A stretch of DNA of 64,000 bases, from positions 189,782,001-189,846,000 of the forward strand of contig NC_067401.1 in the NCBI RefSeq assembly GCF_016432865.1, in the 5' to 3' direction. Below are positions 5,709-63,735 of the stretch, in pieces. A program made the translations under genes and the position numbers. The notes under the pieces were generated by a model. The model saw only the letters and a program-made list of their open reading frames with translations, had not been told where the DNA came from and did not search any database. Every line of letters starts with the position of its first letter. Positions within the stretch are counted from its first letter, which is position 1. The DNA is from Antechinus flavipes. Taxonomy: Eukaryota.

Positions 5709-5877
5709 TAGTTTTGAAGGCTTGTTCTAGGATATTTCCTGTTCATGAGGGGGTCTCTCCCATATTGAATCTTTGGGCAGGTGTCTTCTGGGAGATTTCT
5801 CCAAGGTCCTTGTACTTCACTTGGGAACTCCCACTTTGATCAGGTAAATTCCTAAGGAGAGAAAGCTTCTACATTAG

Positions 5878-6632
5878 TGATGTGGTGCTAGTGATGTGAG
5901 AATTGAGATGGGGAATCCCCTCTGGTCAGTGCAGAAAGCAAAACTGGAAATAGGCTAGTAAAAATAGAGGATTAATTTGCTCAGGAGATAAAGCAGCTGA
6001 GAAATTTGAAATCCATCAGGTAAATTGTGCACAATCTAGACAGGGCAAGAAACTGGTGAGGAGGGGAGAGATTCTGAAGTAGTTAGAGCTGGAAAGAGGA
6101 CTTTCTCTTTGACAAGAACTGGGGAATCACCTGAGTGACTGGGATTGGTATTGGAGGTTTTTAAGCAGTTAGAGTTTGTAAAAGGCTCCCATTTCCCTTT
6201 ACTATTGAGAAATTCTAAGCAGTTAGAATTTGTATGGGTTCTCCCATTTTCCTTTGGTAAGATTGGGTGAATCCTTCATCAAAGAGGACAAGATACTGTG
6301 AACCATGGAAAAATGATGTAATAAGACTCTGTGATTCCCTGATCTTTGAGGGAGGGGAGGTCCTAGGTCAGAAAACCCTGAATTTACTGGTTCTGATTTA
6401 CAACCCCCTCCCCACCCTTTTCACCTGGCCTTGGGGAAACTCCTAAAATAATTCCTACCTTCAATTCACTTAGAGATCACTCTTTAGTTTCTGTCCTCTG
6501 GAATAATCACTACCCATAACTGACCTGGAGATTACTTCCTCAATTCATCTGGTGATCATTCCCAATCCCAGGCCATAGAAGGCTAAATAAAATTGAATTC
6601 TGTCTCCCAAATCTTTGCTAACTTCCTAATCA
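5878..6632 (+). mobile_element. Second LTR-like element sharing its first ~55 bp with 4861-5521
   Basis: Starts TGATGTGGTGCTAGTGATGTGAGAATTGAGATGGGGAATCCCCTCTGGTC. AATAAA near 6586. The 3' end (…CTAATCA) is tentative and no TSD was found. Confidence 0.5.
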
Positions 6633-7065
6633 GGAACTAGCCCACTGAGAACTACTCAATGACAATAACCCCCCCTTTTTTTTGCCAGCTTCAATTTGCA
6701 GACTGAGACTGTGAATTCTTTCAAGAAACCTACTACACTGGCCTGGAGACCCAAGCTGTTAGGATGTCTCACTCCTCAACAAAAGGAACAATCTAAGATA
6801 ACTGGTTCTAAAAACTTATCTAGTGTCCCAAGAAGATAGACCTTTAGGAAGAATTGGGATGAAATACCGAAATTTATAGAGATTAAATGCTATTGTATTG
6901 TGTCCCATTTGGAGGAACTGTTACACACACAAGGGCTGGGTGTAAATTCAAAAGAGCCTTTAATACCCAGCTTGCTGACTCCAATGGCTGCAGCTCCAGA
7001 ATGCCCTTCCTCCAACCCCAGGAGGGGTCAAGAAAGGGAGCTTGATTGATTTAGAAAAGGGGTAT

Positions 7066-7080
7066 GAGAGAGAGAGAGAG

Positions 7081-7119
<39 letters not shown>

Positions 7120-7120
7120 G
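7066..7120. repeat. Compound microsatellite (GA)n(GT)n
   Basis: Read directly from the sequence. Confidence 0.95.
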
Positions 7121-8346
7121 ACAGAGACTGAAAGAGCTTGTGTTGTATCTTCTGTTTCTTTCAGTCAGAATTACAAAGGAAAAAATCTGGCTATTTGGAA
7201 TTATGCAAATAGTTTTTAGCTAGAGAGAGGAAGTAGTAGTTTTGAGCTAGGAAAAGTTTTTAAAACCAAAAAGAAAAAGAAAAAAACCTGACATGTTTCT
7301 GTGGTCCTATAACTGGCCAATTTGGATCTGCAAAAATAATTAAGGTAATAGAACTGCTAAAGCATTTTTAGCAGATTCTGGGGGGTTTTGAGATTAATTA
7401 TTGATTGGCCCCATCAATCAACTAATTTGAGTTAGTCTATTATATTTTTAAGTAGGACTAATTTACATGGCTAAAAGCTTTCGGAGGGTCTGAACCTGAG
7501 GCTTACAAAAAACTGCTCTCTCCGGGATTTTCCAGGCTTCTTTCCCTTAGAGAGGTTTGTGAAATCTGCCATTGCTAGGCTGGCTTCCCTCACTGGCATC
7601 AATTTTCCTGAGGTTCGTGCTGGTGCCCCAACATCTTCAACATGGTTCCTCAGCCTTTCTGGCAAGGAGGGTGAGTTAGTCATTGGGCTACAAAACAGTT
7701 GGATACCTGAATCCAAATTTTTCCAACCCTTTACCTCAGGGTCCTAAAGTCCACCAGTCTCTTAGCAACCTTTTTGTATGTTTCCCTCCCTTGTAGATAG
7801 ACTTGAAAGGGCAGTTTTTTACCATCCTAAATTTTGGGTGTTTAAATTGGGATTCTGATTCTGAAATTATGAGATAATTACTATTAACTAGTGCCTGGTA
7901 AAATTGTGAACTTGTTGATACCGGTGTAAGATTTTGGGAATATGTGTGCATTAATACTTCAGTATTGTGTTGCTATAAGAACTTTAAATTTGTATTTGAT
8001 TTGATCTTAAGTTAAAAAAAATAATATGAGGTGTACTTTAACATTTTGTCAGCCCTGCTGGATATGGGGTATAAATTTTGTGAAATTTGGCCCAAAGTTA
8101 TTTACATATTACCTTTATTATAAATCTTAAGGTTTATCTTGCTTTCTCCCTTTAACAAAGAAGTAAAAGCAAGAAAATTTGTTGTCTAGGAATATGTGTA
8201 ATTGTGAAACAAATTATATTTGAAAGCTATGTAATATGTCTAAAGATAAATAAGATGTTGAGAGATAAAGCACCCCAATAATGTTAGGGATCCCCATGTC
8301 CAGGGGTCTGTGATACTTACAGACATGGCAAAAGAATTTGCAAACT

Positions 8347-8492
8347 AGGGGCAGCTAGGTGATACAGTGGATAGAGCATCAGTCCTGAAGTTAGGAGGAC
8401 TTGAGTTCAAATCTGGCCTCAGACACTTAACACTTCCTAGCTATGTGATCCTGGGCAAGTCACAAATTGCCTTAGCAAAAAAAAAAAAACAA
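8347..8492 (+). mobile_element. WSINE1-like SINE with poly(A) tail
   Basis: GGGGCAGCTAGGTGATACAGTGGATAGAGC head, GAGTTCAAATC B-box, A-tail. Perfect 17-bp TSD AAAAGAATTTGCAAACT (8330-8346 / 8493-8509). Confidence 0.92.
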
Positions 8493-9330
8493 AAAAGAAT
8501 TTGCAAACTCAGTTTGTCTCCAAGTTAAGGGACAAACATTTATTACGCTGACAACTGTAATATCCCGGCTAACTTTCTGGAGGATCGCAGGACCAGCCTT
8601 GGTCTTAGTGGAAGAGTGAAGTAGGCAGGAGAACCAGCAGGAGGATGGTCAAAGATGGAGTGTCTCTATATCCAGTCCTCTCTCAGCCCTTAAATAATTC
8701 AGTATGACTACATCATTACAGCACACTAAGTATGTGTGAACTAGAGAAACATCATCTCATTAATCACACTGAGTAAGCACCCTGCTGTAAGTATCTTTGC
8801 TTCAGGTATACTTTTCTCAGTTCCCCAATATCTTTGGTCCTCTACATCTCCCGCTTTCTTTTGTTTTAGAACACAGATGGTCATGCTCTCTCTGACTTCT
8901 CAGGAAGGGAGGTGAAAACACCAAAAAGGAAATGGGAAGTCAAACCAGATATTGTTAGCAGGTTTCCTCTGAGCTGAAGGGTAATCGAAATAGGTATACA
9001 TAAATCCATCAGCATGGGAGGTTTTACACAAGCACATAGTAATATAATACAGGCTAGTGGTGACATAAAAAACATGAATCAATATAGTGATACAACAAAC
9101 AATACGAATATACATGTCCATAAGTCTTAAAAGGAGGATATATGAATAACAATCACATGTACACTTTCAGCAGCCAAGAGATAGCCCAAAACCAATCTAT
9201 TTTCCATTACTTCATGTGTCAGGGAATCCAGTGATTCCTGCAGATTTTGAAGTCCTGTAACAGTCTCATTAACAATTTTTGATGTTCATGAGTCAATTGC
9301 CATATTCATTGGGTTAACAGCCATGCTTTT

Positions 9331-12300
9331 TCAGTGGCACATGTAGTCAGAGATGGAATCATCTGATGTTTCTTGGGTCTTTTTCTTTGTTTCAAGGGTC
9401 TTCATCTCTTTCCAATGGACAAAGTAAATATGGCTCGTTGGCACCCATCTGATTCCTTCTCCATCTATAGAAATACAAGCAAACCCTCTCCCCCAAGCAA
9501 TTAACCTGTTTGGTTCCTTCCATTCATCACTTTCTGGATCTCTCCACATCACCTGACAATTATCTAAAGATAGTGGAGATGCTCGCACTGGGCACTCCTC
9601 TTCCAGTGAGTTATAAAACCTGTCTGCTGGATGCAGTGTATATCAAAAATAAAAAAAAAAGTGTAAAGAGCTAAATTTAAAAATTCTCTAGGGTTACCTG
9701 TGGCTCCCCCTTTCTTTTGTTTTTGGAGGAGCATCTTGATGTCTCTGTTTCTCCTCTATTACTATTGCCTGTCCTTGAGGATTACAAGATATGCCAATGG
9801 TGTGTAAAATCTGATACTGTGCACAAAAGTGTGCAAAATGTTTAGAAGTATATGCAGGTCCATTATCAGGTTTTATTGCTTGTGGTGCAGCCATAATTGC
9901 AAAAGCTTATATAAGGAATTCAGTGCCCCCTCCGGCTGTCTCTTTTGCTGCTGGTATTGCAAAAGTAAATCTTGAAAAGGTATCTACTACAACATGGATA
10001 AAAGACAGACGACCAAAAAATTTATAATGGGTCACATCCATTTGCCAAATTTCATTGGATCTCAAACCACAAGGGTTCTTCCCTGGAGGGAGTGTAGGAG
10101 TGTAGAAAGGAAGGCAAGCTGTACAGATTTTTACTATGCTCCTAGCTTCCTCTTTTGTTATCCCAAACTGCAAACATAAAGCTTGAGCAGCCTGATGTTA
10201 TTTATTTATTTATTTTATAGAGCAAAAAGTATTTTTATTTTTATTTTCTTTCTTTCTTTCTTTCTTTATTTTTTTTAGCCTGATGATATTTAGACTGAGA
10301 TTCTTGTGCTGCTTGAAACAAAAAAGTATTGGCTAACATGGTTAGAAGGCGATTTGCCTTTGAATTTCCATAAAAAATAGGACCTGGAAGTCCACTCTGT
10401 TAGAGAATGAACATGCAGGAAAGATATAAATCTTACCTGGATGCTTTCTCACTTGCTCTTGAAGTTCCTTAAAGAGCTGATATATATTAGAAGCTACAAA
10501 TTTTATTTGGGCTGTGACAATTCTTTGTACCACACCTACTGAATATGCTGAATCAGATATTATATTTAAACCTCCTAGATATTAAGAGCTAGCATGCTTA
10601 CATACAATTCATTTTGCTGAGTGGACTGAAAAGTTCTGACTACTTTCTTTATAGTTAAGTCATGAGAGTTTACAACACAAATGTTATGTTTGGATGCATC
10701 TCTAAAGATAAGTTGGTCCTTAAAGGTTTAACCTTAGAAACCTTTTCTTCAAAAATCCATTGCCAATTATGTAATAGCCAGGATATCTTTAATGAAGACC
10801 CGTGTGTAGAATTTGGAGCTGTGTCCAATAAAATTTGCCACTCTGGGATGGTTTCACAGCATACATTAATTTGTTCATTGGTTACAGAGAGGCTTGGAGA
10901 GACTTACATGAACTGATGCTAAGTGAAATGAGCAGAACCAGGAGATCATTATACACTTCAACAACAATATGAGGATGTATTCTGATGGAAGTGGATTTCT
11001 TTGACAAAGAGACCTAACTCAGTTTCAATTGATAAATGATGGACAGAAGCAACTATACCCAAAGAAAAGACACTGGGAAATGAATGTAAACTATTTGCAT
11101 TTTTGTTTTTCTTCCTGGGTTATTTTTACCTTCTGAATTCAATTCTCCCTGTGCAATAAGAGAACTATTCGGTTCTACAAACATATTTATATCTAGGATA
11201 TACTGCAACATATTTAACATACATAGGATTGCTTGCCATCTAGGGGAGGGGGTGGAGGGAGGGAGGGGAAAAATTGGAACAGAAGCGAGTGCAAGGGATA
11301 ATGTTGTTACCCTGGCATGGGTTCTGTCAATAAAAAGTTATTATAAAATAAAATAAAATAAATTGTTAATTGGTATAAAAGGTGTATATCTTGTCAGGAT
11401 TTATCCCGATAATTGTACTACTGGCTTAATGGCCTTTAATAAGATTATAGCCACAAGCACTGGGTAAGGAGTAAGGCTTTGTTCCAGTTTTGCTGGGAGG
11501 TTAACCTATTTTATCACACTGTGTCCTTGATGAAGGACTGCTGTGGATGCCTCTTTTGTAGCAAAAACTGATATTTCCAAGGGTTTCTGAGTAACTCTTT
11601 CAACCACATTGGATAAAGCCAGTTCAACTTCTCTCAAAGCCTCTTCAGCTTCTTTTGCAACCTGGCATGGTGAGTTTTAAGCACTATCTCCCCTTAAAAT
11701 GTCATATAATGATTGTAATTGATAGGTAGTTAGGGCCTAATGCTGGACACATCCATTGGATATCTCCTACCAATTTCTGAACGTCATTTAAGGTATTCAA
11801 CTTCTCTGTTCTTAAAGAAAGCTTTTGTACTGTAAGCATCTTAGGATATACTTCATATCCTAAATATTGAAAAGGAGCGTGCCTTTGAATTTTTTCTGGA
11901 GCTATATGCAATTTGGAATTCCTTAGTGTTTCTATGGTCTTTTGTAGACATGCTTCTAACATTTGCTTCTCAGGTGCACACCCCAAAGTATTGTCCATAT
12001 AATGTAATAATATAACTTTTGGAAATGTTTTTCTTACTGGAGTAAGAGCAGCAGCAACATACATTTGACACAGAGTAGGGCTATTTTTCATTCCCTGTGG
12101 CAAAACTGTCCATTCATATCTTTTATAAGGCTCACTAAATTAGTGCTGGGTACTGAAAAGGCAAATCTTTTCATATCCTCCTTATCTAGAGGGATAGAAT
12201 AGAAACACTCCTTAATGTCTATAACCCAAAGAGGCTATTCTCTAGGCAACTGAGTAGAAGATGGAAGTCCAGGCTGAAGAGTTCCCGTAGTTTCCATCTG

Positions 12301-21360: not shown

Positions 21361-21935
21361 TTATCTCCTAGATTCTTTGAGTTTGTCAAACACTAGAATA
21401 CTATAATCATGGACTATTGTGTCTTGTGAACTTAACCTATTCCACTGATCAACTATTCTATTTTTTAACCAGTACCAAATGGTTTTGATGACCGCTACTT
21501 TATAATATAGTTTTAGGTCTGGAAGAGGTAAGCCATCATTTGCATTTTTTTCATTAATTCCCTTCTGTAGTTGTGTTGGACGTCCCACAACTAATTTGCT
21601 GATCCACTGGTTTCTGAACCACTGACAGAATGGTAAACACTGCTGGATTTTGGTTATAAGCCTCCTGATAGATTCCCCTGGTACTAAGAGACCACTTTGC
21701 CCTGGATCCCTGAGCTGCACCTGCGCTAGGCTGTCTTCCCCCACTCCCATGCTTGATTGAAACAGACCTTTTCTAAAGTGCTCCCAAAATTTCTGCAGGA
21801 AATTTGTTATACTCCAAATATTTGTGGGTTCTGTCACTCCAAAACTCGTTCAGAGGCTTGATCTGGTATTGATCTGAGGGAAGCCAGGAAAAGATCAGAG
21901 ACCTGTCTACTCTGCCATCTTGGCTCTGCTCCCCA
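21361..21935 (-). mobile_element. Internally deleted LINE-1: 5'UTR joined to a late ORF2 segment
   Basis: Minus-strand start GGGGAGCAGAGCCAAGATGGCAGAGTAGACAGG near 21935. ORF2 peptide [33 protein letters not shown] at about 21400-21550. Confidence 0.8.
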
Positions 21936-24423
21936 AAATTATAGCTCTTGAAACAGTCAGACAGAGGTGACACAGCTGGTGAATGCTGAGGTTGTTGAAT
22001 GCCTGCATGCTGGTTCTTCTTGCCTCTAGGTTCAGCCCTCTGCCACTACACCACCTGGCTAGCTAAAAAATTGATAATGGAAATTTCCAATTAGGAAAGG
22101 ATTCTTTCAGTGGTTTCTTATGAATCCAGGTTTTATTGGAATTCTCTTAAATTGCCCCAAGATGATTGGTTTTGTTTGACTTCCAGGTTGACTAGAAACT
22201 CTCCTGGGAAAGTACTGATTTATCATATTGCCTTGAGTATTTCTTGAAAGCAGTAGTATAGGACTTAGTTCAATGGGGAAATAAAAACCACAAAATGACA
22301 GATTCTGAACTTTGGTAGAAACACAGAAATCCTGAACATACATGAAAGGAATATTTTAATCTTCCTGACTGGTGCTCATTCAGCCTCAGCTTGAAGACTT
22401 CTCAAAACATCCTATTTTACTTTCTGACATTGCTAGGAAGTTTTTCCTTAATGTCAAGCCTAAAATTGCTTCTGAAATTTCTACCCTTTGCTCTTGGTTC
22501 TACTTCATATGGATAAAGAACAATTGGAATTACTCTTCCACATGCCAAACCTTCAGGTACTTCCAAATGTATCATGCTACAACATCTCCCCGACCCTACC
22601 CCAATCCCAGTCTTTTCTTCCTCACATTAAACATCCTCATTGTTTTTCAACTACTCTTCCAATGCTGGTAACTAAAATAAAGCTTAACTGATGTATTATC
22701 ATGAAAAATCTCAATACTGGATAACTATTAAGAAATATACTCTCTCCTCTCAGCAGAGAAATGAGTGGTTATGGAAATGGAAACCAGTCCAAAAGGGGTC
22801 CATGTCAATTAACTCTGTTTAAATGTCTTTCCTTTCTCATAAAGAAGAGATTCAGTGGTGAGGACAAGGCAAGTGAAAGGGAAATAACTGAGATATAAAA
22901 ACAAAAGACAATAAATATCACATAAGGACCAGAATCCAGGTATCCTTACTGAGCTAGTATTCTTTCCACTATATTTGGCCAACACTATATGTACCCACTA
23001 AAAAGTTTCCTAAACACAAAAGGAACTCACTTCATAAACTGGCTCAGCATGGTTGTTTATCAAAAGCTTCCTCGATGTTGATATTCCCTCAAATGGCCTC
23101 CGTGACCCTGGACCTTTTCTTTAGGGATGGGGCAGGGCAACAACTGGACCCAGATTGGGTCCTCATGATCTCCCCATACACTTAGTATTCCTGGCACACA
23201 GAAAATCCCCTCAGCTTCCAAGGATACAGATTTGGAATCCTCCTTCTACAATTTCTCCCGGTGTGGAAGAACTCTCATCAGAGGATCAGCCATGTGAGTA
23301 ATAAATGGGAACCCTAAATTTTGGAAATAAATGTGACACCTCACATGGGTGAATGGGGAAAGAGCTCTGCATCGGGAACTACAGGACCCAAGTTCAAATC
23401 AACTTCAACCAACTCTTCAGATCTCTATTTTCTCATCTGTAAAATGAGAATCCTAGAGCTAATAAATTCTAAAATCTTTCTAAGCTCTATAACCCATATA
23501 TGGTCCCACCCACACTGGATAAATGTCTTAGAAAAAAAAGAAGCTTGGAGAACAGGAAGTGAATAAGGGTTAAATGAAGAGAAAAATTGCCATTTACAAC
23601 TTGGCTACAATCTTTCTAGACTCACTTTACAGAACTCCCTTTTATGAACTCCCATTCTATACAAACTGACCTACTTATTTTTTTCTGTACAATGAGCACA
23701 ATCCTTATGAGTATATTCAGAATTCTCTGCCCAATGGTCTGTCAGAGCTGCTGGCTTCCAGAATTCCTTCTTCAATAGGCAGCTGATTAGCTGCAGTCTT
23801 TCTCCATCTTTAGTCATCCTTTTCAAATGGAGTGCTCTTATCTGCTAGGGAAATACAAAGCTCTTTCAGCTAGAGTAAAAATATTTTAAAATGTACATCT
23901 CTTATAGTTGTTTTCATGGAGTTTCTCATAACAATCCTGTGAAGGGAGTTGCTATGTTATCCCCATTTTATAGAAAAGGAAACTGAAAAAAGTTATGGAT
24001 CACAGAATTATAAAGAGTCTGTGGCAGAATTTGAACTCAAGACTTCCTGATGCCAAAGCTGGTATCCATTGTTATATTTAGCCATATATGAATGAGAAAA
24101 GAGAAATAGAAAGAATAAAGTTGGAAGTTTAGAAAAAGTAATAATAGAGGTAAAGAGGCAAAAATAAAGAATACAGAGGAATTGGAGGAAAGGGGGGAGG
24201 GGAAAAGGAGAAAGGAAGACCAAGACAGGAAACAGAAAAGCAAATAGCAATCAGTCAATAGGTAAAAAGAGTAAAAAGAGGGAAAGGAAGAAAGAAGAGA
24301 TAAATAAAACCTTGAAATAGACCAGGCCTAATGTCAAACCCAGCTTTCGAGGCTAGGAGAATTAGGGACAGATGCCTGCCTTGCTCCCACTCCAATTTCC
24401 AGACCTCCTTCCCAATTTCTCAG

Positions 24424-25816
24424 AGACTCCAATTCTATGATATGACTTCACTGTGATATCTCAGCCTAGTACAGGGCAATCTGCTACATGGCCCTGGGTT
24501 ACTTAGGTAGTCGTCTATATGACCTATGACAGTGAGGTTGAGAGGGCCAAGTTGAGAGTCCTAGGCACTGAGAAGGTACCTAAGGGGAGGTGTGTCTTCC
24601 TGAAAAGACAGGACCAGGTCATTGGCTGAAGTCTAAGGAGCATTTTGAAGCTCAGCAGTGAGCTAGTGATTCAAGCTTAAACCATTCCTTTGCCCCTATT
24701 CTGGTCCTCATGAGGTCCAGGAAAAACTCCAGCCCTTTCTACACTCTTACTAGATTCAGGAATTCCTTCTTCCAGTCCATCTTCCCACCTCTCAGTAGGG
24801 ACCAGAAGTTGGATCCCTAGACCTCCTATTCTTCTTGAACCCACTTATTTGGATTTCCCCCAAAATAGGACATAGGAGTTCTTATGTTCTCAGACTACAC
24901 CTTCATGCACACATCCCTTTCCTTCCTACACTACAGTGGCCTTCTTGCTACTGACTTTAGGACACGGGGTGCAGGAAATGACACCAGTGGCTTTAGCTGT
25001 CCTATAGCTATGAACTGGGAGGTGATGGCTTCTGGTGCTTTGCCTATAATGGCGAGTACTTCACTGCCCACAATCCAGCAAGCTGGACTTGGGGATCGTC
25101 CCTTCCAGAACCAGAAAGGAAGAGGAGACAGGTGGTGGTAGGCAGCCAGCTTTCAGCAGTATGAGCCTGGCTGCAGAGAGATTGTAGGAAGAGACTTTGG
25201 GAATTGCTATGGGCAGAGCTTAGAGGCCAGGAACCCAAGCCTCTAGGATACTAGGACTTTCTCTTGTCCAAGACTTCTTAGGCCTTGGATGAGATGAGTG
25301 TCTTAAATTTCTCCTTCAGAAAGAACCCATAGAAAATGTTAAAATTCCCAATTAGAGACAAGGAAAACACATTGAGAGCAATTCTCTACAAGGGTCTTAG
25401 TGGCAGTGGGGAAGTGGATGGATTTGTGTGTTTTTATGCCTCTGATCTCTTATTTTCTTTATTGTCAGGAGATTCTTGCAGACTTAATTGATAGGGAGAC
25501 TACAAGCCTACATAACCGGGGAGGGAGGGAAAAGCGGGGAAGGCAGGGGAAAGTGAATGGGGCAGTAAGGAGAGGTTAAGAAACTAAGACAACCCTTAAC
25601 CCTTAGTTCCTCATTATTGTCTCCATCTTTTATGTGAGTCTCCAGGAGGCCCTTGGGGAACACACCCTCAGATGGCTAGCATTTGATCTCTATCCACCTA
25701 ATATCACCCTGACCTGGCTTACAGATAAAGAACCTCTGAGCCAGAGACTTCAGGACCCTGAGGCTACCTGACCTAGAGGAGATAGGAACTGACCAATTTC
25801 ACCTAGACACCAAGTC
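24424..25816 (+). pseudogene. MHC class I-like (MIC-like) pseudogene: alpha1 24424-24657, alpha2 24975-~25246, alpha3 ~25607-25816 (SINE-interrupted)
   Basis: Hand translation across lesions. alpha1: L*YDFTVISQPSTGQS/YMALGYLGSRL/MTYDSEVERAKLR, with a phase-1 AG acceptor (24422-23) and a GTGAG donor (24658). alpha2: GNDT/L*LSYSYELGGDGFWCFAYNGEYF...TW...*AWLQRDCRKRLWELL. alpha3: HTLRWLAFDLYPPNITLTWLTDKEPLSQ...T*PRGD/GTDQ. Position next to MCCD1 matches human MICB. Confidence 0.8.
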
Positions 25817-26050
25817 TAGGTGGCACAATGGCTAGATCCCTGGGGCTAGAGTTAGGAAGACTTGAGTTCAAATGTGATCTCACTTACTACCTGTATGAGG
25901 CTAGGCTAGTCATTTAGCATCTGTCTGCCTCAGTTTCCTCAACTGTAAAATTGAGAAAATAATAGCACTTACCTCCCAAGGCTGTTGTGAGGATCAAATG
26001 AAATATTTGTAAAGCACTTGGCACAGTGCCTGGCATTTAATTAATATTGT
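25817..26050 (+). mobile_element. MIR/MAR1-like SINE inserted in the class I-like alpha3 exon
   Basis: CTAGGTGGCACAATGG head, GAGTTCAAAT, CTGCCTCAGTTTCCTCAACTGTAAAAT core, GTAAAGCACTTGGCACAGTGCCTGGCA tail. Confidence 0.85.
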
Positions 26051-28278
26051 TTCCCCTTCCCTCTTCTAGACCTACACCCCACCATCACCTACTCTTCTAA
26101 TGTTCAGAAATCATTCCTCCTTTGTTCATATTCATAGATTCTAACCTCTCTTTTCTTCACCCTTCAGGGAATAATCAGACACTTTCTCAGTGCTGAGCCT
26201 ACTTTAGGTGAGATCCCAGGGCAAGGGCAAGGGATAAAGAGCTGTGGGAGCTTAAGGCTAGATATTTAGGAGTTGAATGGAAGGAAAAGGATGCAAAGCA
26301 ATTAGATGTGCTTCTACCATTGTTTCTCTCTCATAGACCAAGGAAGAGACCATTCCTCAGAGGCATGGAGACAATAACACAGACACCTTCTCAAGTGAGA
26401 AATATAAAATATTTTTTCCCTATTACTGGAGGATTTTTCTCCCTCTTCATCAGCAGCCTTGGTTAAGAGTCTGGGAATTTAGTTTACATTAATTTATTCA
26501 CCAAAAATAACAACCTTGAGCTAGGGGATCTTCTGAGTATTAAAGAATTCTTAATTCAAACTAGGGAAAAGGGGAAATTGTTACACTAAGTCTCGGGACA
26601 AGATGAAATAAATATAAACAGGTTCAATAGAAATTTAGACACATTAGTAAATGATGGAACCCTAATGGATTAAGTTCAAAATAGGAAAGGCTGGTTGATT
26701 CCTTCACACTAGCCCTCTCAGGCTGCTGTAGACCTGGATTCCAGAGTTTGGTCCCTCAGTATTTCTATTCACTTACAAAAGACTGACTTTACTATATAAC
26801 AAATATTTATCAAGTCAGAACCTTTATGTCCAGCAATAGGAAGAGTACAAAGAATAATGATTCTTGTCCATAAGACAGTCCAGCTTCAGAGACAAAACTT
26901 AATATATACAAAACAATTAGATAACATCTAAGTACTAAATTGTGTGGCTCTTAGGTGTAATATAATAGTGAGAAAAGGCTGATGGCTTTTTAGGACTTGT
27001 GCTTAGTTCTCAACAGAAAGAAAGGAAAGGTATAGAAGCGAGGAAGGGTGAAAGCAGTACTAATAAAAAACAGAACCGAATATAAGAAATTGAGGTCAAA
27101 TGTATAGTAGTGTGTTTAATTTGGGGAAGGGGTTGGGGGAAACATTTTAGAAAAGGTATCAACAGACTGGAGTATCTACAAGAATCAGATGAAAGGCCAG
27201 GAAATTCAACATGGAGAATAACCTAGTATTTATGTAGCATTATGCCATTTAACAGATTAAGAAAATTGAGGCAGAGGTTGAATGACTTGTGCCCAGAGTC
27301 AGCCAGCTAGCTATGCATCAGAGACTGGGTTTGAACTTATTAGATCTTGTGTCCCACTATCAATCTACTTCAACACCTAGCTGAAGGGACACTTAGTAGG
27401 CACTTAATCAGTTGTATTTCCAGAATTCGAAAAGATATTTGGCTTGGCCCCAAAGCACAGAAATAAGCATTGAGTGAACATTGTAAAGGTACACAGGTAA
27501 AAGGAATTGATGAAAAGGAAACAATCAAAAAGTGGAATAAGTAGTTTAAGAAGATTCCTATCCCCTACACCCCACCCCATCCCACCCCATCCCCTAAGGT
27601 CCTCAGTTAAAGAACTGACCACTTCTCAGGATTACTAATAGATGTGTCCCGAACTGGACTGACAAGATGATCCTTGAGGTTCCTTCTAGCTCTGGGAATG
27701 ATTTTCTGTGAGTAAATAGTAAAAGTGAGGAGTTACAAAAGAAAAAGAGGGAGAAGCTAGACTGTGAGGAGGAGGAACAATTTATAGGAAAATGAGAGGT
27801 CAGTTCTTTTCAAATGAAAATTCAAATATTAAGCACAACACACTTTCCTATCAAAGTAGGACTATTTATCAAGAAGCCAGAAAGGATAGGCCTGGGGAGT
27901 AAGGTAGGAGGGGGTAGTGATCCTGCTCTGGGGAAACAAGAGCAGGCAAGGGTGAAAGCAATGGTAGGGATAAAAAATAAAAAGAATGAGTAGGAAACAC
28001 AGGGAAAAAAACCCTGTGAACCTGATTTAGGTTCACAAAGAACCTAAACTGGAACTACCTTAGCACTTAAGATCCAAAGGACAGTGGTGCCTGGTGGATT
28101 AAAATATTATATGCAGCCCAGGAACAGGAGTTCATGAACTCTGGGGTTGGCCAGTCTGAGGAGGGAACAAGAGCAGTGAAGCGGGCAGGGGCGGGGGACT
28201 GGGCAGGGCCCTGGAAGAAGTCAGTTCCTGGCAACTGCAAGGCAGTTTGGACATAACTCCCTCCCCAGCCCGACTGCC

Positions 28279-29096
28279 ATGGGTCTCCCTCTGCCCTGGC
28301 TCTCTCATTACTGCTACCGGTTCCTGCTGTCCCGGATCATGGCCCGCCACATCTCTCGTAGGGTCTGCTCCCAGAATGCTGGGCCACCTACAGAAGAATT
28401 AGCTACCGAAGAGACCAGGAAGACTCTATTCCCAAACAGGGTAAGAAGGGTGAGAATGGGGACTTGCATTACTTTAGACTGGGGGAAAAGAATTAGTCCA
28501 ATCCAATCCACCAACACCCACACCCACAGTCCCCTTGGGATAGAAACATCCAATTCTCTAATCCATACTAGAGTCCTTTCCCTTCCACTCCTCCCCCAAT
28601 TCCTTCATATAGCAGAGTCCATAAAGTCCTTGAACAGGTCCCTGGTTTAGGAGTTAATTATTTGTCAGAGGGGAGGGGCAGTTTCCTTTTTTTTTTTTTT
28701 TTTTTTCAGCAAGGCCATACTGTCCCTTTCATCCAGACATGAGACCAATATCTGCCCCTAGTACCTAATCTCTTCTACTGTCCTAATATAGCAGGAGGCC
28801 AGGCCTTGATTTCAAAAGAAGGGGTAACAGAAGAAGCAGTTTTTCTCTCCAGTAAACTCTGCATCACAGCCTAGTTAAGTTCCTCTGAATCCTCGGCATC
28901 TTCCCTCCAGGGTCCAGGCCACAGAAGAGCTGAACTGGCCCAGGCAGAAGAACTGCTGGAACAACAACTAGAGCTATATCAAGCCCTGCTGGAAGGGCAA
29001 GAAGGGGCATGGGAAGCTCAAGCCCTTGTACTCAAGATCCAGAAGCTCAAGGAGCAGATGAGGCGGCACCGAGACAGCCTGAGAGGTGATGCTTGA
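28279..29096 (+). CDS. MCCD1: Mitochondrial coiled-coil domain protein 1 (2 exons: 28279-28440, 28911-29096; 115 aa)
   Basis: GT-AG phase-0 splice. Exon 2 encodes GPGHRRAELAQAEELLEQQLELYQALLEGQEGAWEAQALVLKIQKLKEQMRRH, which I recognise as MCCD1. Arg-rich N-terminal targeting-like sequence. Syntenic, tail-to-tail with DDX39B. Confidence 0.93.
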
Positions 29097-29639: not shown

Positions 29640-37301
<7,662 letters not shown>

Positions 37302-42964: not shown

Positions 42965-44240
42965 TCTTTTATTATTATTATTATTATAGCTTTTTATATA
43001 CAAAACATATGCATGGGTAATTTTTCAACATTGATCCTTGCAAAAACTTCTATTTCAACTTTTCCCCTCCTTCCCTCCATCCTCTCCCCTAAATGGCAGG
43101 TAATCCCATACATGTTAAATATGTTAAAGTATATGTTAAATATAATCTATGTATACATATTTATACAATTATCTTGTTGCACAAGAAAGATCAGATTTAG
43201 AAAGAAGTTAAAAATAACCTGAGAAGAAAAAACAAAAATGCAAGCAAACAATAACAGAAAGAGTGGAAATGTTATGTTGTGGTCCATACTCATTTCCTAA
43301 GTTCTTTCTCTGGGTGTAGCTGGTTCTGTTCATTACAGATCAATTGGAAGTGATTTGGATCCTTTCATTGCTTAAGAGAGCTAATTCATCAGAATTGATC
43401 ATCATGTAATATTGTTGAAGTGTATAATGATCTCCTGGTTCTGCTCATTTCACTTAGCAACGTTCATGTAAGTCTCTCCAAGTCTCTCTGTATTCATCCT
43501 GCTGGTCATTTCTTACAGAACAATAATATTCCATAATATTCATATACCACAATTTATTCAGCCATTCTCTGATTGATGGGCATCTACTCAATTTCTAGTT
43601 TCTAGCCACTATGAAAAGGGCTGCCACAAACATTTTTGCACATACGGGTCCCTTTCCCTTCTTTAATATCTCTTTGGGTTATAAGCCCAGTAGTAACACT
43701 GTTGGATCAAAGGAGATGCACAGTTTTATAACTTTTTGAGTATACTTCCAAACTGCTCTCCGGAATGGGTGGCTCCATTCACAACTCCACCAACAATGCA
43801 TCAGTGTCCCAATTTTCCCACATCCCCTCCAACATTTGTCATTATTTTTTCCTGTCCCCTTAGTCAATCTGACAGGTGTGTAGTGGTATCTTAGAGTTGT
43901 CTTAATTTGCATTTCTCTGATCAACAATGATTTGGAACACCTTTTCCTATGGGTAGAAAGTTTCAATTTCATCATCTGAAAATTGTTCATATCCTTTGAC
44001 CATTTGTCAATTGGAGAATGGCTTGATTTCTTATAAATTAGAGTCAGTTCTCTATATATTTTAGAGATGAGATCTTTATAAAAACCTTTAGCTGTAGAAA
44101 TGTTTTCCCAGTTTATTGCTTCCCTTCTAATCCTATCCACATTAGATTTATTTGTACAAAAGCTTTTTAACTTTATATAATCGAAATTTTCTATTTTGTG
44201 ATCAGTAATGACCTCTAGATCTTCTTTGGTCACAAATTCT
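42965..44240 (-). mobile_element. 5'-truncated LINE-1 (ORF2 C-terminus plus 3'UTR)
   Basis: ORF 43679-44233 contains REMQIKTTLRYHYTPVR and KCWRGCGKIGTLMHCWW. The antisense tail is T/ATT-rich at about 42965-42995. Confidence 0.93.
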
Positions 44241-55908: not shown

Positions 55909-56759
55909 ATGACCTCATCTGGAGTCCTATGCCTTCTGGGGGCACTGAGCCTCCATGCGCTTTGGCTGCAGCCACCAGAGGCTCAGGTGAGAAGCAACAG
56001 GACTGGGGGATAATTTGGGGATTGAGAGCTTAAAGGGGCAAGAAAGAAATCTTGGCCCTCTGGTACCTTCTTAATCATGTTCTTTCATAGGGGGCTCCCA
56101 ATCTTGATAACTCCCACTCATCTAGCCCAGCCCTACCCCAGACAACTCAACAGTTCAGCCAGAAGAGCCTCATAAGAGACATTCTCAAACCAGCTGCCCA
56201 TCTTGTTGGTAAGAATCTAGATGTTCTACCTTCTTCACTCCCCTCATAGACCCAAGCAACCAGCTCCCAGATTTCTCCTCCCTTAGTGGCCTGTATATGT
56301 ATTCTCCCCGGTCCCGTAACATTCCCTGACTTCTGTGTCTCTCCCCTAGGAGACTTCAGCGCCAAGGACTCTATACGTTGGAGAGCAAGCACAGATCACG
56401 CTTTCCTCCGACATGGCTTTTCTCTAAGGAACAACTCCCTCTTGGTCCCCACAAGCGGCCTCTACTTCATTTACTCCCAAGTTGTCTTCTCAGGAGCCAG
56501 TTGTTCTCAGGTTACTCCCACCCCGCTCTATTTGAGCCATGAGGTTCTCCTCTTCTCCACCAAATACCAAGTTCATGTACCCCTTCTGAGTGCTCAAAAG
56601 TCTGTGTGCCCAGGGATTCGAGGATCCTGGATGAAATCAATCTACCAGGGAGCTGTGTTCCTGCTCACTCAGGGAGATCAGCTATCCACTCATACAGATG
56701 GTATCTCTCACCTGCTTCCGTCCCCTAGTAGTGTCTTTTTGGGGGCCTTTGCACTATAA
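55909..56759 (+). CDS. LTA: Lymphotoxin-alpha (coding exons 55909-55986, 56091-56208, 56350-56759; 201 aa)
   Basis: GT-AG junctions, 606 nt. Signal peptide, [69 protein letters not shown]. 3'UTR ARE near 57165-57200 and AATAAA at 57410-57415. Confidence 0.98.
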
Positions 56760-58623: not shown

Positions 58624-60267
58624 ATGAGCACAGAGAGCATGATCCGAGACGTGGAACTAGCAGAAGAGGCACTCCAAAGGAAGGCAAGGGGGCCCCAAGG
58701 CCCTGGACGCTGCCTCTGCCTCACACTTATCTCCTTCCTTTTTCTTGCTGGGGCTACTATTCTCTTCTGCCTGCTGCACTTCGGTGTGATAGGACCTCAG
58801 AAGGAAGAGGTGAGATGCCTCACAATATTTGGCCATAAAAACAGGAACAGAAAGGAATTGGGAAAGGCAGGATAGATGGGGAAAGAGAGATAAGGATGTA
58901 AAGAAAAAGAGAGAGAAAAATAATAATAGAGTGATGGGGAAATTACAGTAATGAAAATAGAAAAGAAAAAGAATAATGGAAAGGAAGAAAGAGGGGGAGA
59001 ACTAAAGAGAAATATAAATGGGGAGATAGAAAGAGAAAGATGGAATAGGGAAGAAAGATATGAGAGAAAAGAGACAAGATGAGAATTATGAGAGGCATAT
59101 GTAGGTTCTTCTAAATATACATTCTAACCTCTGTCTTTTTAACTTTTTGTCCATAATTCATCATTGATCTCTTCTTTTTTCGTTCTTCTCTAGGAGCAAG
59201 ATGCCTTTCGTGACATGAAACCTTTGACTCAGAGAGTCAGTAAGTGTCCCTTGTTTACTATCCCAATCTCTTAAACCCTCATTTTCAAGTGGGATATACC
59301 TGGTTTGAGGCTGGTAATAGGATGAGGGAACAGATATTAGGGGACAGGAAGCATCTCTGAATTTTGGTGGGGAATGGCAGAGAGGAATGAAAGAGAGCTT
59401 AAGTTCAGTTTTTAACTTTCATTTCTTCCTTCTCTTTTCTCTCCCATTTTAGGATCTTGTCTCAGTGAAAGTGACAAGCCTGTAGCTCATGTTGTAGGTA
59501 ATTATCTGAAATTTTGGAAATGGGGCCAAATGGGGCCTGGAATCAGAGAATGGGCTAAGTCAATATGGAACTTTGGGGATAAAACAGAACCTATAGGAGA
59601 AGAAATATTAGAAAGGAAGGAAGGGGGAGAGGGTGGAAATGAACTGGATGGCTAGAACTGGAAGAAAAGGATGAAGAGGAAAGAAAGAATTCAAGGGATA
59701 AGATTCTATGGGGATGGAAAGAACCTGAGGGATATGACACAAAGAATGTCTTGAATTTTAGAAATAAGTTATGGGGAACAAAATGTGGAAGATGGAATTC
59801 AAAAGAAGCATGTGGATTTAACTTTTTCTTCCTCTTTCCCTACAGCTAATCCCAAGGCAGAGGGGCAGCTCCAGTGGTTGAATAGGAGTGCCAATGCTCT
59901 CCTGAATAATGGCATGGAACTGAAAGACAACCAGCTGGTGGTGCCTGCCACTGGGCTCTACCTGGTCTACTCCCAGCTCCTTTTCAAGGGAGAAGATTGT
60001 GCCAGCGAACCCCTGTTCCTCACTCATACCATCTCCCGGGTTTCATTGTCCTACCAACACAAAGTCAGCCTTCTTGCTGCCATCAAGAGTCCGTGCCAGA
60101 AGGCAACACAAGGAGCTAGGGAAGCTAATCCCTGGTATGAACCAATCTACCTGGGGGGTGTCTTCCAGCTTGAAAAAGGTGATAAGCTCAGTTCTGACAC
60201 CAACTATCCAAAATATCTTGACTTAGCTGAGTCTGGCCAGGTCTATTTTGGGATCATTGCTCTTTGA
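58624..60267 (+). CDS. TNF: Tumour necrosis factor (exons 58624-58809, 59194-59239, 59453-59497, 59846-60267; 232 aa)
   Basis: GT-AG junctions, 699 nt. [79 protein letters not shown]. Confidence 0.99.
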
Positions 60268-62944: not shown

Positions 62945-63735
62945 TTCTTTCTTTTTTTTTTTTAATAATTTTTTATTGATAGAACCCATGCCAGGGTAAT
63001 TTTTACAGCATTATCCCTTGCATTCACTTCTGTTCCGATTTTTCCCCTCCCTCCCTCCACCCCTTCCCCGAGATGGCAAGCAGTCCTTTACATGTTGAAT
63101 GGGTTGCAGTATATCCTAGATACAATATATGTGTGCAGAACCGAATAGTTTTCTTGTTGCACAGGGAGAATTGAATTCAGAAGGTATAAATAACCCGGGA
63201 GGAAAAACATAAATGCAAGCAGTTTATATTCATTTCCAGTGTTCTTTCTCTGGGTGTAGCTGCTTCTGTCCATCTTTGATCAATTAAGGCTCTCTTTATC
63301 AAAGAGGTCCACTTCCATCAGAATACATCCTCAAATAGTATCATTGTTGAGGTATATAATGATCTCCTGGTTCTGCTCATTTCACTCAGCATCAGTTCAT
63401 GTAAGTCTCGCCAGTCCTCTCTGTATTCATCCTGCTGGTCGTTCCTTACAGAACAATAATATTCCATAACGTTCATATACCACAATTTACTCAACCATTC
63501 TCCAATTGATGGACATCCTTTCATTTTCCAGCTTCTAGCCACTACAAACAGGACTGCCACAAACATTTTGGCACATACAGGTCCCTTTCCCTTCTCTTTG
63601 GGGTATAAGCCCAGTAGAAACACTGCTGGATCAAAGGATATGCACAGCTTGATAACTTTTTGAGCATAGTTCCAAATTGCTTTCCAGAATGGCTGGATGT
63701 GTTCACAATTCCACCAACAATGTATCAGTGTTCTC
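62945..63735 (-). mobile_element. 5'-truncated LINE-1 (ORF2 end plus 3'UTR)
   Basis: ORF 63318-63623 LLGLYPKE...MFVAVLFVVARSWK...CPSIGEWLSKLWY, poly(T) at the left end. Confidence 0.92.

Follow-up and report, generated by a model that had tools for sequence, protein, structure and literature searches.

A dead MHC class I-type gene lies beside MCCD1 in the marsupial Antechinus flavipes: its 3' end comes 2.46 kb before the start codon of MCCD1, and it is on the same strand. It is an unprocessed (that is, intron-bearing) and non-functional pseudogene, and very probably a member of the marsupial MIC family, the orthologue of an opossum pseudogene that has been catalogued as md_chain40. The window in which it was found, meaning the whole 64,000-nucleotide stretch of DNA that was analysed, has ~40% G+C and contains zero N. 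The features that matter for the argument are these:

24424..24657, + strand: remnant of the alpha1 exon (translations; Pfam MHC_I, E 2.7e-4; md_chain40 tblastn; three-species alignment)
24658..24987, + strand: alpha1-alpha2 intron (GTGAGC donor, CACCAG acceptor)
24988..~25230, + strand: remnant of the alpha2 exon (translations; Pfam MHC_I positions 112-170, E 1.7e-3; weak PDB class I matches)
25607..25816, + strand: 5' two-thirds of the alpha3 (Ig C1-set) exon (PDB phmmer; Pfam C1-set; tblastn)
25817..26050, + strand: SINE-type repeat inside alpha3, 234 bp (copies of the repeat elsewhere; insertion common to Sminthopsis)
28279..28650, + strand: first coding exon of MCCD1 (Pfam MCCD1, E 2.7e-5; 93% identity to Sminthopsis crassicaudata MCCD1)
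36912..37280, - strand: N-terminal coding exon of DDX39B (BAT1) (PDB DDX39B, E 1.3e-42)
56286-56759, + strand: last exon of LTA (TNF-family domain)
59785-60267, + strand: last exon of TNF (TNF-family domain)

The anatomy of the relic is that of a class I gene taken apart by mutation. The alpha1 exon, flanked by an AG acceptor (24422-24423) and by the GTGAGC donor (from 24658), translates as TPIL, a stop, YDFTVISQPSTGQS, a -1 shift, YMALGYLGSRLY, a -2 shift, MTYDSEVERAKLRV...FLKRQDQVIG, a second stop, and SLRSIL. The first of these stops (TGA, 24438-24440) falls at an Arg position and the second (TGA, 24627-24629) at a codon that is Trp in opossum and in Dromiciops; the -1 frameshift is near 24484, the -2 frameshift near 24520, and 9 bp have been deleted near 24647. 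The alpha2 exon begins after CACCAG, carries at its 5' end an 8-nt deletion relative to opossum, and reads WL, a stop (TAG, 24994-24996, at a Gln position), LSYSYELGGDGFWCFAYNGEYF...SAV, a stop (TGA, 25162-25164, at an Arg position), and AWLQRDCRKRLWELL; its Cys101 has been replaced by Tyr (25009-25011) while Cys164 is retained (25183-25185), and its donor at ~25230 has probably changed from GT to GA. What is left of alpha3 reads ..SPSFM, a stop, VSRRP.., a shift (near 25650), EHTLRWLAFDLYPPNITLTWLTDKEPLSQRLQDPEAT, a stop, PRGDRN, a stop, PISPRHQV and a last stop: TGA at 25635-25637, at 25769-25771 (an Arg position) and at 25790-25792, and TAG at 25814-25816. Here Cys203 has become Trp (25673-25675). 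In all, seven stops interrupt the frame and it shifts at least four times; neither the disulfide cysteine pairs (101-164 and 203-259) nor an open frame is preserved, which fits a pseudogene.

The SINE-type repeat that interrupts alpha3 may have a tail extending to ~26070, and a possible TCTAG direct repeat flanks both its ends. The window has six other, diverged copies, and more of them occupy non-orthologous sites in the two marsupial loci used for comparison (L001, the Sminthopsis crassicaudata locus, and L002, the Dromiciops gliroides locus, 10 kb upstream of MCCD1); ARAGORN found no tRNA in the repeat. Past the SINE (26051-26140) nothing aligns convincingly by eye to the expected continuation of alpha3 (..VEVPS..Y.CLVEHQ..), and no leader, transmembrane or cytoplasmic exon of the relic was identified.

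(A note on the DNA directly 5' of the alpha1 exon: 24060-24300 is a purine-rich, low-complexity tract with AAAGAGRAA runs, and neither a leader exon nor a promoter of the relic is recognisable in it.)

Much of this had been proposed in a sequence-only reading of the same DNA, and that description stands. The peptide strings that it quoted are all present, spread over different frames as they would be in a frameshifted gene, and its three exon-like blocks are alpha1, alpha2 and alpha3, in that order on the + strand with introns between. It had placed TGA stops at Arg codons: those at 24438, 25162 and 25769 do fall at positions that are Arg in class I proteins or opossum MIC, which is consistent with decay at CpG. 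It had both structural first cysteines lost, as Cys101 and Cys203 indeed are, and a SINE splitting alpha3, as the repeat starting at 25817 does.

Is a gene broken in so many places still demonstrably class I? For the Pfam scans each exon was read through with an X at every break. Thus joined, alpha1 aligns with positions 5-45 of MHC_I (PF00129) at 21.0 bits and alpha2 with positions 112-170 at 18.4 bits, each against a gathering score of 28.3; the simple sum for the two exons, which were scanned separately, is 39 bits. The alpha3 remnant aligns with positions 9-48 of C1-set (E 0.013-0.029; 16.3 bits against a gathering score of 21), a shortfall explained by the SINE, which leaves no more than the first half of the domain ahead of it. 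Scores below threshold are what a decayed gene compared with half a model should give; when only stop-free pieces are scanned, MHC_I yields nothing and C1-set a sub-threshold match. The sequence-only reading had named the lack of a significant MHC_I or C1-set profile match to a repaired translation as its refutation; the matches obtained, sub-threshold but in the correct segments and in the correct order, do not refute it.

In direct comparison with known proteins, the alpha3 piece matches PDB chains (phmmer) at E 6.5e-6 over class I residues 198-229, and the best 60 listed of its 1326 matches (E<=10) are all MHC class I or class I-like; conversely, a eutherian class I alpha3 protein finds a single tblastn match in a six-frame search of the 64 kb, and that match is the relic (E 0.001). 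The alpha2 exon has weak class I matches in PDB (residues 107-144). No class I chain appeared among the PDB matches of a second alpha2 piece or of a 40-residue alpha1 piece. A search of representative proteins with alpha3 returned three, none of them a marsupial MIC: the eutherian tblastn query just mentioned, which is a chimeric alpha3 triple, an Ig repeat protein of fish-like type, and an unrelated repeat protein. Separate alpha1, alpha2 and alpha3 exons, ordered and divided by introns, together with an alpha3 domain of the class I C1-set type, confirm the relic as a class I-type pseudogene.

That the likeness is due to chance, or that a live gene has merely been broken by assembly errors, is scarcely credible. 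The individual Pfam scores, all below their gathering thresholds, are what can be said for it; against it, three domains match the correct model segments in order and alpha3 reaches its E of 6.5e-6 in PDB. What refutes it outright is that an independent assembly, that of Sminthopsis crassicaudata, has identical stops and the same SINE.

The Sminthopsis comparison also dates the decay. Positions 5782-10405 of the Sminthopsis locus align over 23986-28695 of the window, the whole relic included. The two genomes share 1) the SINE, inserted at the same point; 2) the TGA stops at 25635, 25769 and 25790; 3) the replacement of Cys203 by Trp; 4) the -1 shift in alpha1 and the 8-nt deletion at the start of alpha2; and 5) a stop at one Trp codon (24627), TGA in A. 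flavipes and TAA in Sminthopsis. The gene was therefore already dead in their common ancestor, before the two lineages split, and it has been drifting since. Private to A. flavipes in this comparison are the TAG at 24994, the -2 shift and the change of Cys101 to Tyr (Cys101 is still present in Sminthopsis); likewise, at 24438 and 25162 A. flavipes has TGA and Sminthopsis TGG. Sminthopsis has deletions of its own, of 14, 32 and 16 bp. The exons have been conserved no better than the introns: ungapped identity is 85-92% in the former and 91-95% in the latter (91.5% in the alpha1-alpha2 intron). Nor do the indels come in multiples of three.

(An observation on that intron: its last 30 nt, 24957-24986, translate as LGHGVQEMTP, which agrees with opossum md_chain40 at 9 of 10 residues and is identical in Sminthopsis. 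Preservation of this kind, across so great a distance, is unusual in the intron of a dead gene.)

Beyond the dasyurids the trace becomes fainter. Dromiciops gliroides retains decayed orthologous DNA at this place, of which alpha1 remains, itself broken by a 17-bp deletion at the start of the exon and by frameshifts; a counterpart of window 24927-26413, which holds alpha2, alpha3 and the SINE, cannot be aligned in the Dromiciops locus. The matched blocks on either side abut there at 8030-8037, and the flanks align at ~68%. We found no lesion that all three marsupial orders share, and the opossum alpha1 is an open stretch of 88 codons. None of Sminthopsis, Trichosurus, Dromiciops and Monodelphis has an annotated gene within 10 kb upstream of MCCD1.

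From 5' to 3' the order in the window is relic (+), MCCD1 (+), DDX39B (-), LTA (+) and TNF (+), and the arrangement of relic and MCCD1 recurs in Sminthopsis and in Dromiciops. We take the human MHC map to have MICB, MCCD1, DDX39B, LTA and TNF in matching order and orientation, with MICB immediately upstream of MCCD1-DDX39B and, like the relic, on the MCCD1 strand. The assignment of the relic to a MICB-syntenic site, made at first sight of the sequence, is correct in this respect: MCCD1, DDX39B, LTA and TNF all lie 3' of it, landmarks that put the window at the 'inflammatory' class III boundary of the marsupial MHC and the relic where a marsupial MIC-family gene is expected, at the class III/framework boundary beside MCCD1-DDX39B. 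Human MICB and MICA are like the relic in having a class I-like exon structure of three domains; MICB is a functional NKG2D ligand, whereas the relic is dead and has no open frame.

The 24 kb of the window upstream of the relic hold an ERV-type reverse transcriptase and other repeats. (One open stretch, 11702-12103 on the - strand, encodes reverse-transcriptase palm and thumb (Pfam RVT_1, E 2.4e-18; RVT_thumb, E 2e-9) and is a fragment of an endogenous retrovirus; the DNA around it, upstream of MCCD1, is rich in repeats. The fragment agrees with the situation in opossum, where ERV-type LTR elements are concentrated between MIC and MCCD1 (Deakin et al. 2006). Three further stretches on the - strand, at 21361-21837, 43679-44233 and 63318-63623, resemble by eye fragments from the C-terminal end of LINE-1 ORF2, although Pfam has no match to the first of them.)

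(Another note, on the other end of the window: the TNF exon protein has 89% identity to its counterpart in Sarcophilus, 87% in Sminthopsis, 85% in koala and 78% in opossum; it is thus closest to dasyurid proteins, and the genome falls close to or inside Dasyuridae among Australasian marsupials. Between its receptor-binding domain (59785-60267, +) and that of S. crassicaudata there are 18 differences in 140 residues (87% identity), in contrast to the 91-95% found between the same species in neighbouring non-coding DNA. Either TNF has evolved unusually fast between these dasyurids or the gene model or sequence of one of them is questionable.)

To which class I family did the gene belong? Papenfuss et al. 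(2015; BMC Genomics 16:535, PMC4509613) used custom profiles in a survey of class I genes, and their supplement provided the marsupial queries: excerpts of 55-60 residues, searched with tblastn against the whole window. The alpha1 excerpt of md_chain40 has a sole match in the 64 kb, at 24420-24557 (E 7.7e-6). That of opossum MIC (md_MIC) matches 24441-24485 at 10 of 15 residues (E 5e-4), and that of wallaby MIC-like gives two consecutive matches that span the frameshift (E 0.014). A classical alpha1 excerpt from the devil has no match at E<=10 anywhere in the window. Alpha1 is thus closer to the MIC family than to classical class I.

The other two domains say less. The alpha2 excerpts of md_MIC and md_MIC-like find no tblastn match at 24988-25230, and what alpha2 has in common with the MIC family is the GFW motif, also present in HFE and AZGP1, and domain length only. 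By eye, alpha3 is ~46% identical to classical class I and ~41% to opossum MIC, and the 60 best-listed of its 1326 PDB matches are classical or H2-T/HFE-type chains, with MICA and MICB chains absent among them. With similarity in alpha2 undetectable and alpha3 not diagnostic, the MIC assignment rests on alpha1 and on orthology with md_chain40.

The relic might instead be what is left of a class I gene from outside the MIC family, classical or other, that stood near MCCD1 by chance: the best-listed alpha3 matches are classical, the T-R-P-x-G-D motif is of classical type, and the MIC and MIC-like alpha2 excerpts of opossum go unmatched. We nevertheless consider this very unlikely. Three MIC-family alpha1 excerpts match where the classical devil excerpt does not; in the sequence file of PMC4509613 the string SQPS occurs once, in md_MIC, and YMALGY is confined to md_chain40 and wallaby MIC-like; and md_chain40 has an alpha3 that is of MIC type in its C-terminal part (..NVEVPS..CLVEHQ.LN). 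The MIC-like label that the relic was first given is accordingly upheld, by the alpha1 matches and md_chain40, though not by the motifs then cited for it, RAK and NITL..PLS, which do not discriminate: strings of the RAE/RAK type recur in sequences of the MIC family (chain40, MIC-like and md_MIC), and at the NITL..PLS point opossum MIC has PDISLTW and reads PDISLTWLQDGKPT.

Opossum md_chain40 ('MIC2'; MonDom5 chr2:267606293-267607759, + strand) was described as unannotated, with in-frame stops, untranscribed, and was placed as a duplicate of MIC (PMC4509613). The relic is alike in being a class I-like sequence with in-frame stops that had escaped annotation, in its alpha1 signature, in the string at the intron end, and in exon spacing: measured from the start of alpha1, the following exons begin at 552 and 1347 bp in md_chain40 (PMC4509613) and at ~564 and ~1343 bp in the relic. 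The two are collinear (by eye) through alpha1, the intron end (LGHGVQ.MTP) and the start of alpha2, and share the alpha1 strings ILxYDFT..SQ, YMALGY, YDSEV.RA.LR and FLKRQ(D/E)Q.I..SL.SIL. A second md_chain40 excerpt matches Dromiciops alpha1 (68%, E 4e-5) and the intron-end string in both the window and Sminthopsis. They differ in their states of decay: md_chain40 still has an open alpha1, where the relic has two stops and two frameshifts, and in the survey md_chain40 was matched over the first 27 alpha2 codons and the C-terminal part of alpha3 (PMC4509613 models), whereas in the relic alpha2 is almost complete and alpha3 retains its N-terminal part. Similarity between the proteins and the spacing of the exons point to orthology, and md_chain40 would then adjoin MCCD1 in opossum.

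Opossum MIC (ENSMODG00000015810) has an alpha1 N-terminus of the same type as the relic, (L)RYDF.IVSQPS.GQS.Y..LGYL, and the MIC-like genes of opossum and wallaby (ENSMODG00000015796 and ENSMEUG00000008250) have LQYDLTV.SQ..YMALGYIN. Both MIC and MIC-like share with the relic GFW in alpha2, AF.FYPP.I.LTWL.D in alpha3 and the class III boundary region. The opossum genes are intact, however, stand on the opposite strand 50-170 kb from md_chain40, and have alpha2 domains unlike that of the relic by BLAST. As for opossum MIC, its place relative to the MIC/MILL clade is only a basal one (Belov 2006).

Did the death of this gene deprive the lineage of its NKG2D ligand? The sequence-only reading had suggested that, if the relic is MIC, the lineage has lost its MHC-linked stress ligand, which takes the relic to be the lineage's only MIC gene. 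We think this improbable. There are points in its favour: the relic occupies the MICB-equivalent site; the window is without another class I-like exon (none was found elsewhere in the 64 kb by tblastn with eutherian alpha3 and marsupial alpha1 excerpts); and a motif search, as distinct from a homology search, of the PMC4509613 sequences finds MIC-type genes from opossum and wallaby only, none labelled devil. Opossum, however, has this pseudogene together with intact MIC and MIC-like genes 50-170 kb away: on opossum chr2, MIC is at 267.43 Mb (-), MIC-like at 267.557 Mb (-) and ULBP-like at 267.519 Mb (+) (PMC4509613). In wallaby, a repeat-rich stretch of 33 kb separates MIC from MCCD1 (Deakin et al. 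2006). The window covers 24 kb upstream of the relic, and surviving paralogues would lie outside it. Ligand loss does not follow from a relic whose opossum counterpart coexists with intact MIC and MIC-like genes: the relic is an old fossil, and the loss of the lineage's stress ligand is not supported.

These observations suggest the following history. Australidelphian marsupials once had a MIC-type gene next to MCCD1, on its upstream side, placed and oriented like MICB. Orthology with md_chain40 would put a copy at this site in the marsupial ancestor, which thus probably had the gene too. It has since decayed in dasyurids, in Dromiciops and in opossum. In A. flavipes the decay shows in stops (three of them TGA at Arg positions, consistent with decay at CpG), frameshifting indels, the loss of two cysteines, the probable loss of a donor, and the insertion of a SINE in alpha3.

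A bolder construction can be put on the same facts: that the true positional orthologue of MICA/MICB is the relic rather than any MIC gene that survives in marsupials; that the ancestral therian MIC locus, beside MCCD1, died in marsupials before the American/Australasian split; and that the live MIC and MIC-like genes, further out and on the opposite strand, are paralogues that took over. This is conceivable but doubtful. In its stronger variant, dasyurids may be without any intact MIC.

What is already known is the opossum pseudogene md_chain40, of which the relic is very probably the orthologue in the dasyurid lineage. What is new is the anatomy of the relic, its persistence at the MICB-equivalent site in at least two Australidelphian orders, and its death before the split from Sminthopsis. 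Whether dasyurids have an NKG2D ligand is of consequence for how natural-killer cells recognise devil facial tumours; the relic does not show that they lack one. It does bear on two more general matters: the positional orthology of eutherian and marsupial MIC genes, and the turnover of genes for NKG2D ligands.
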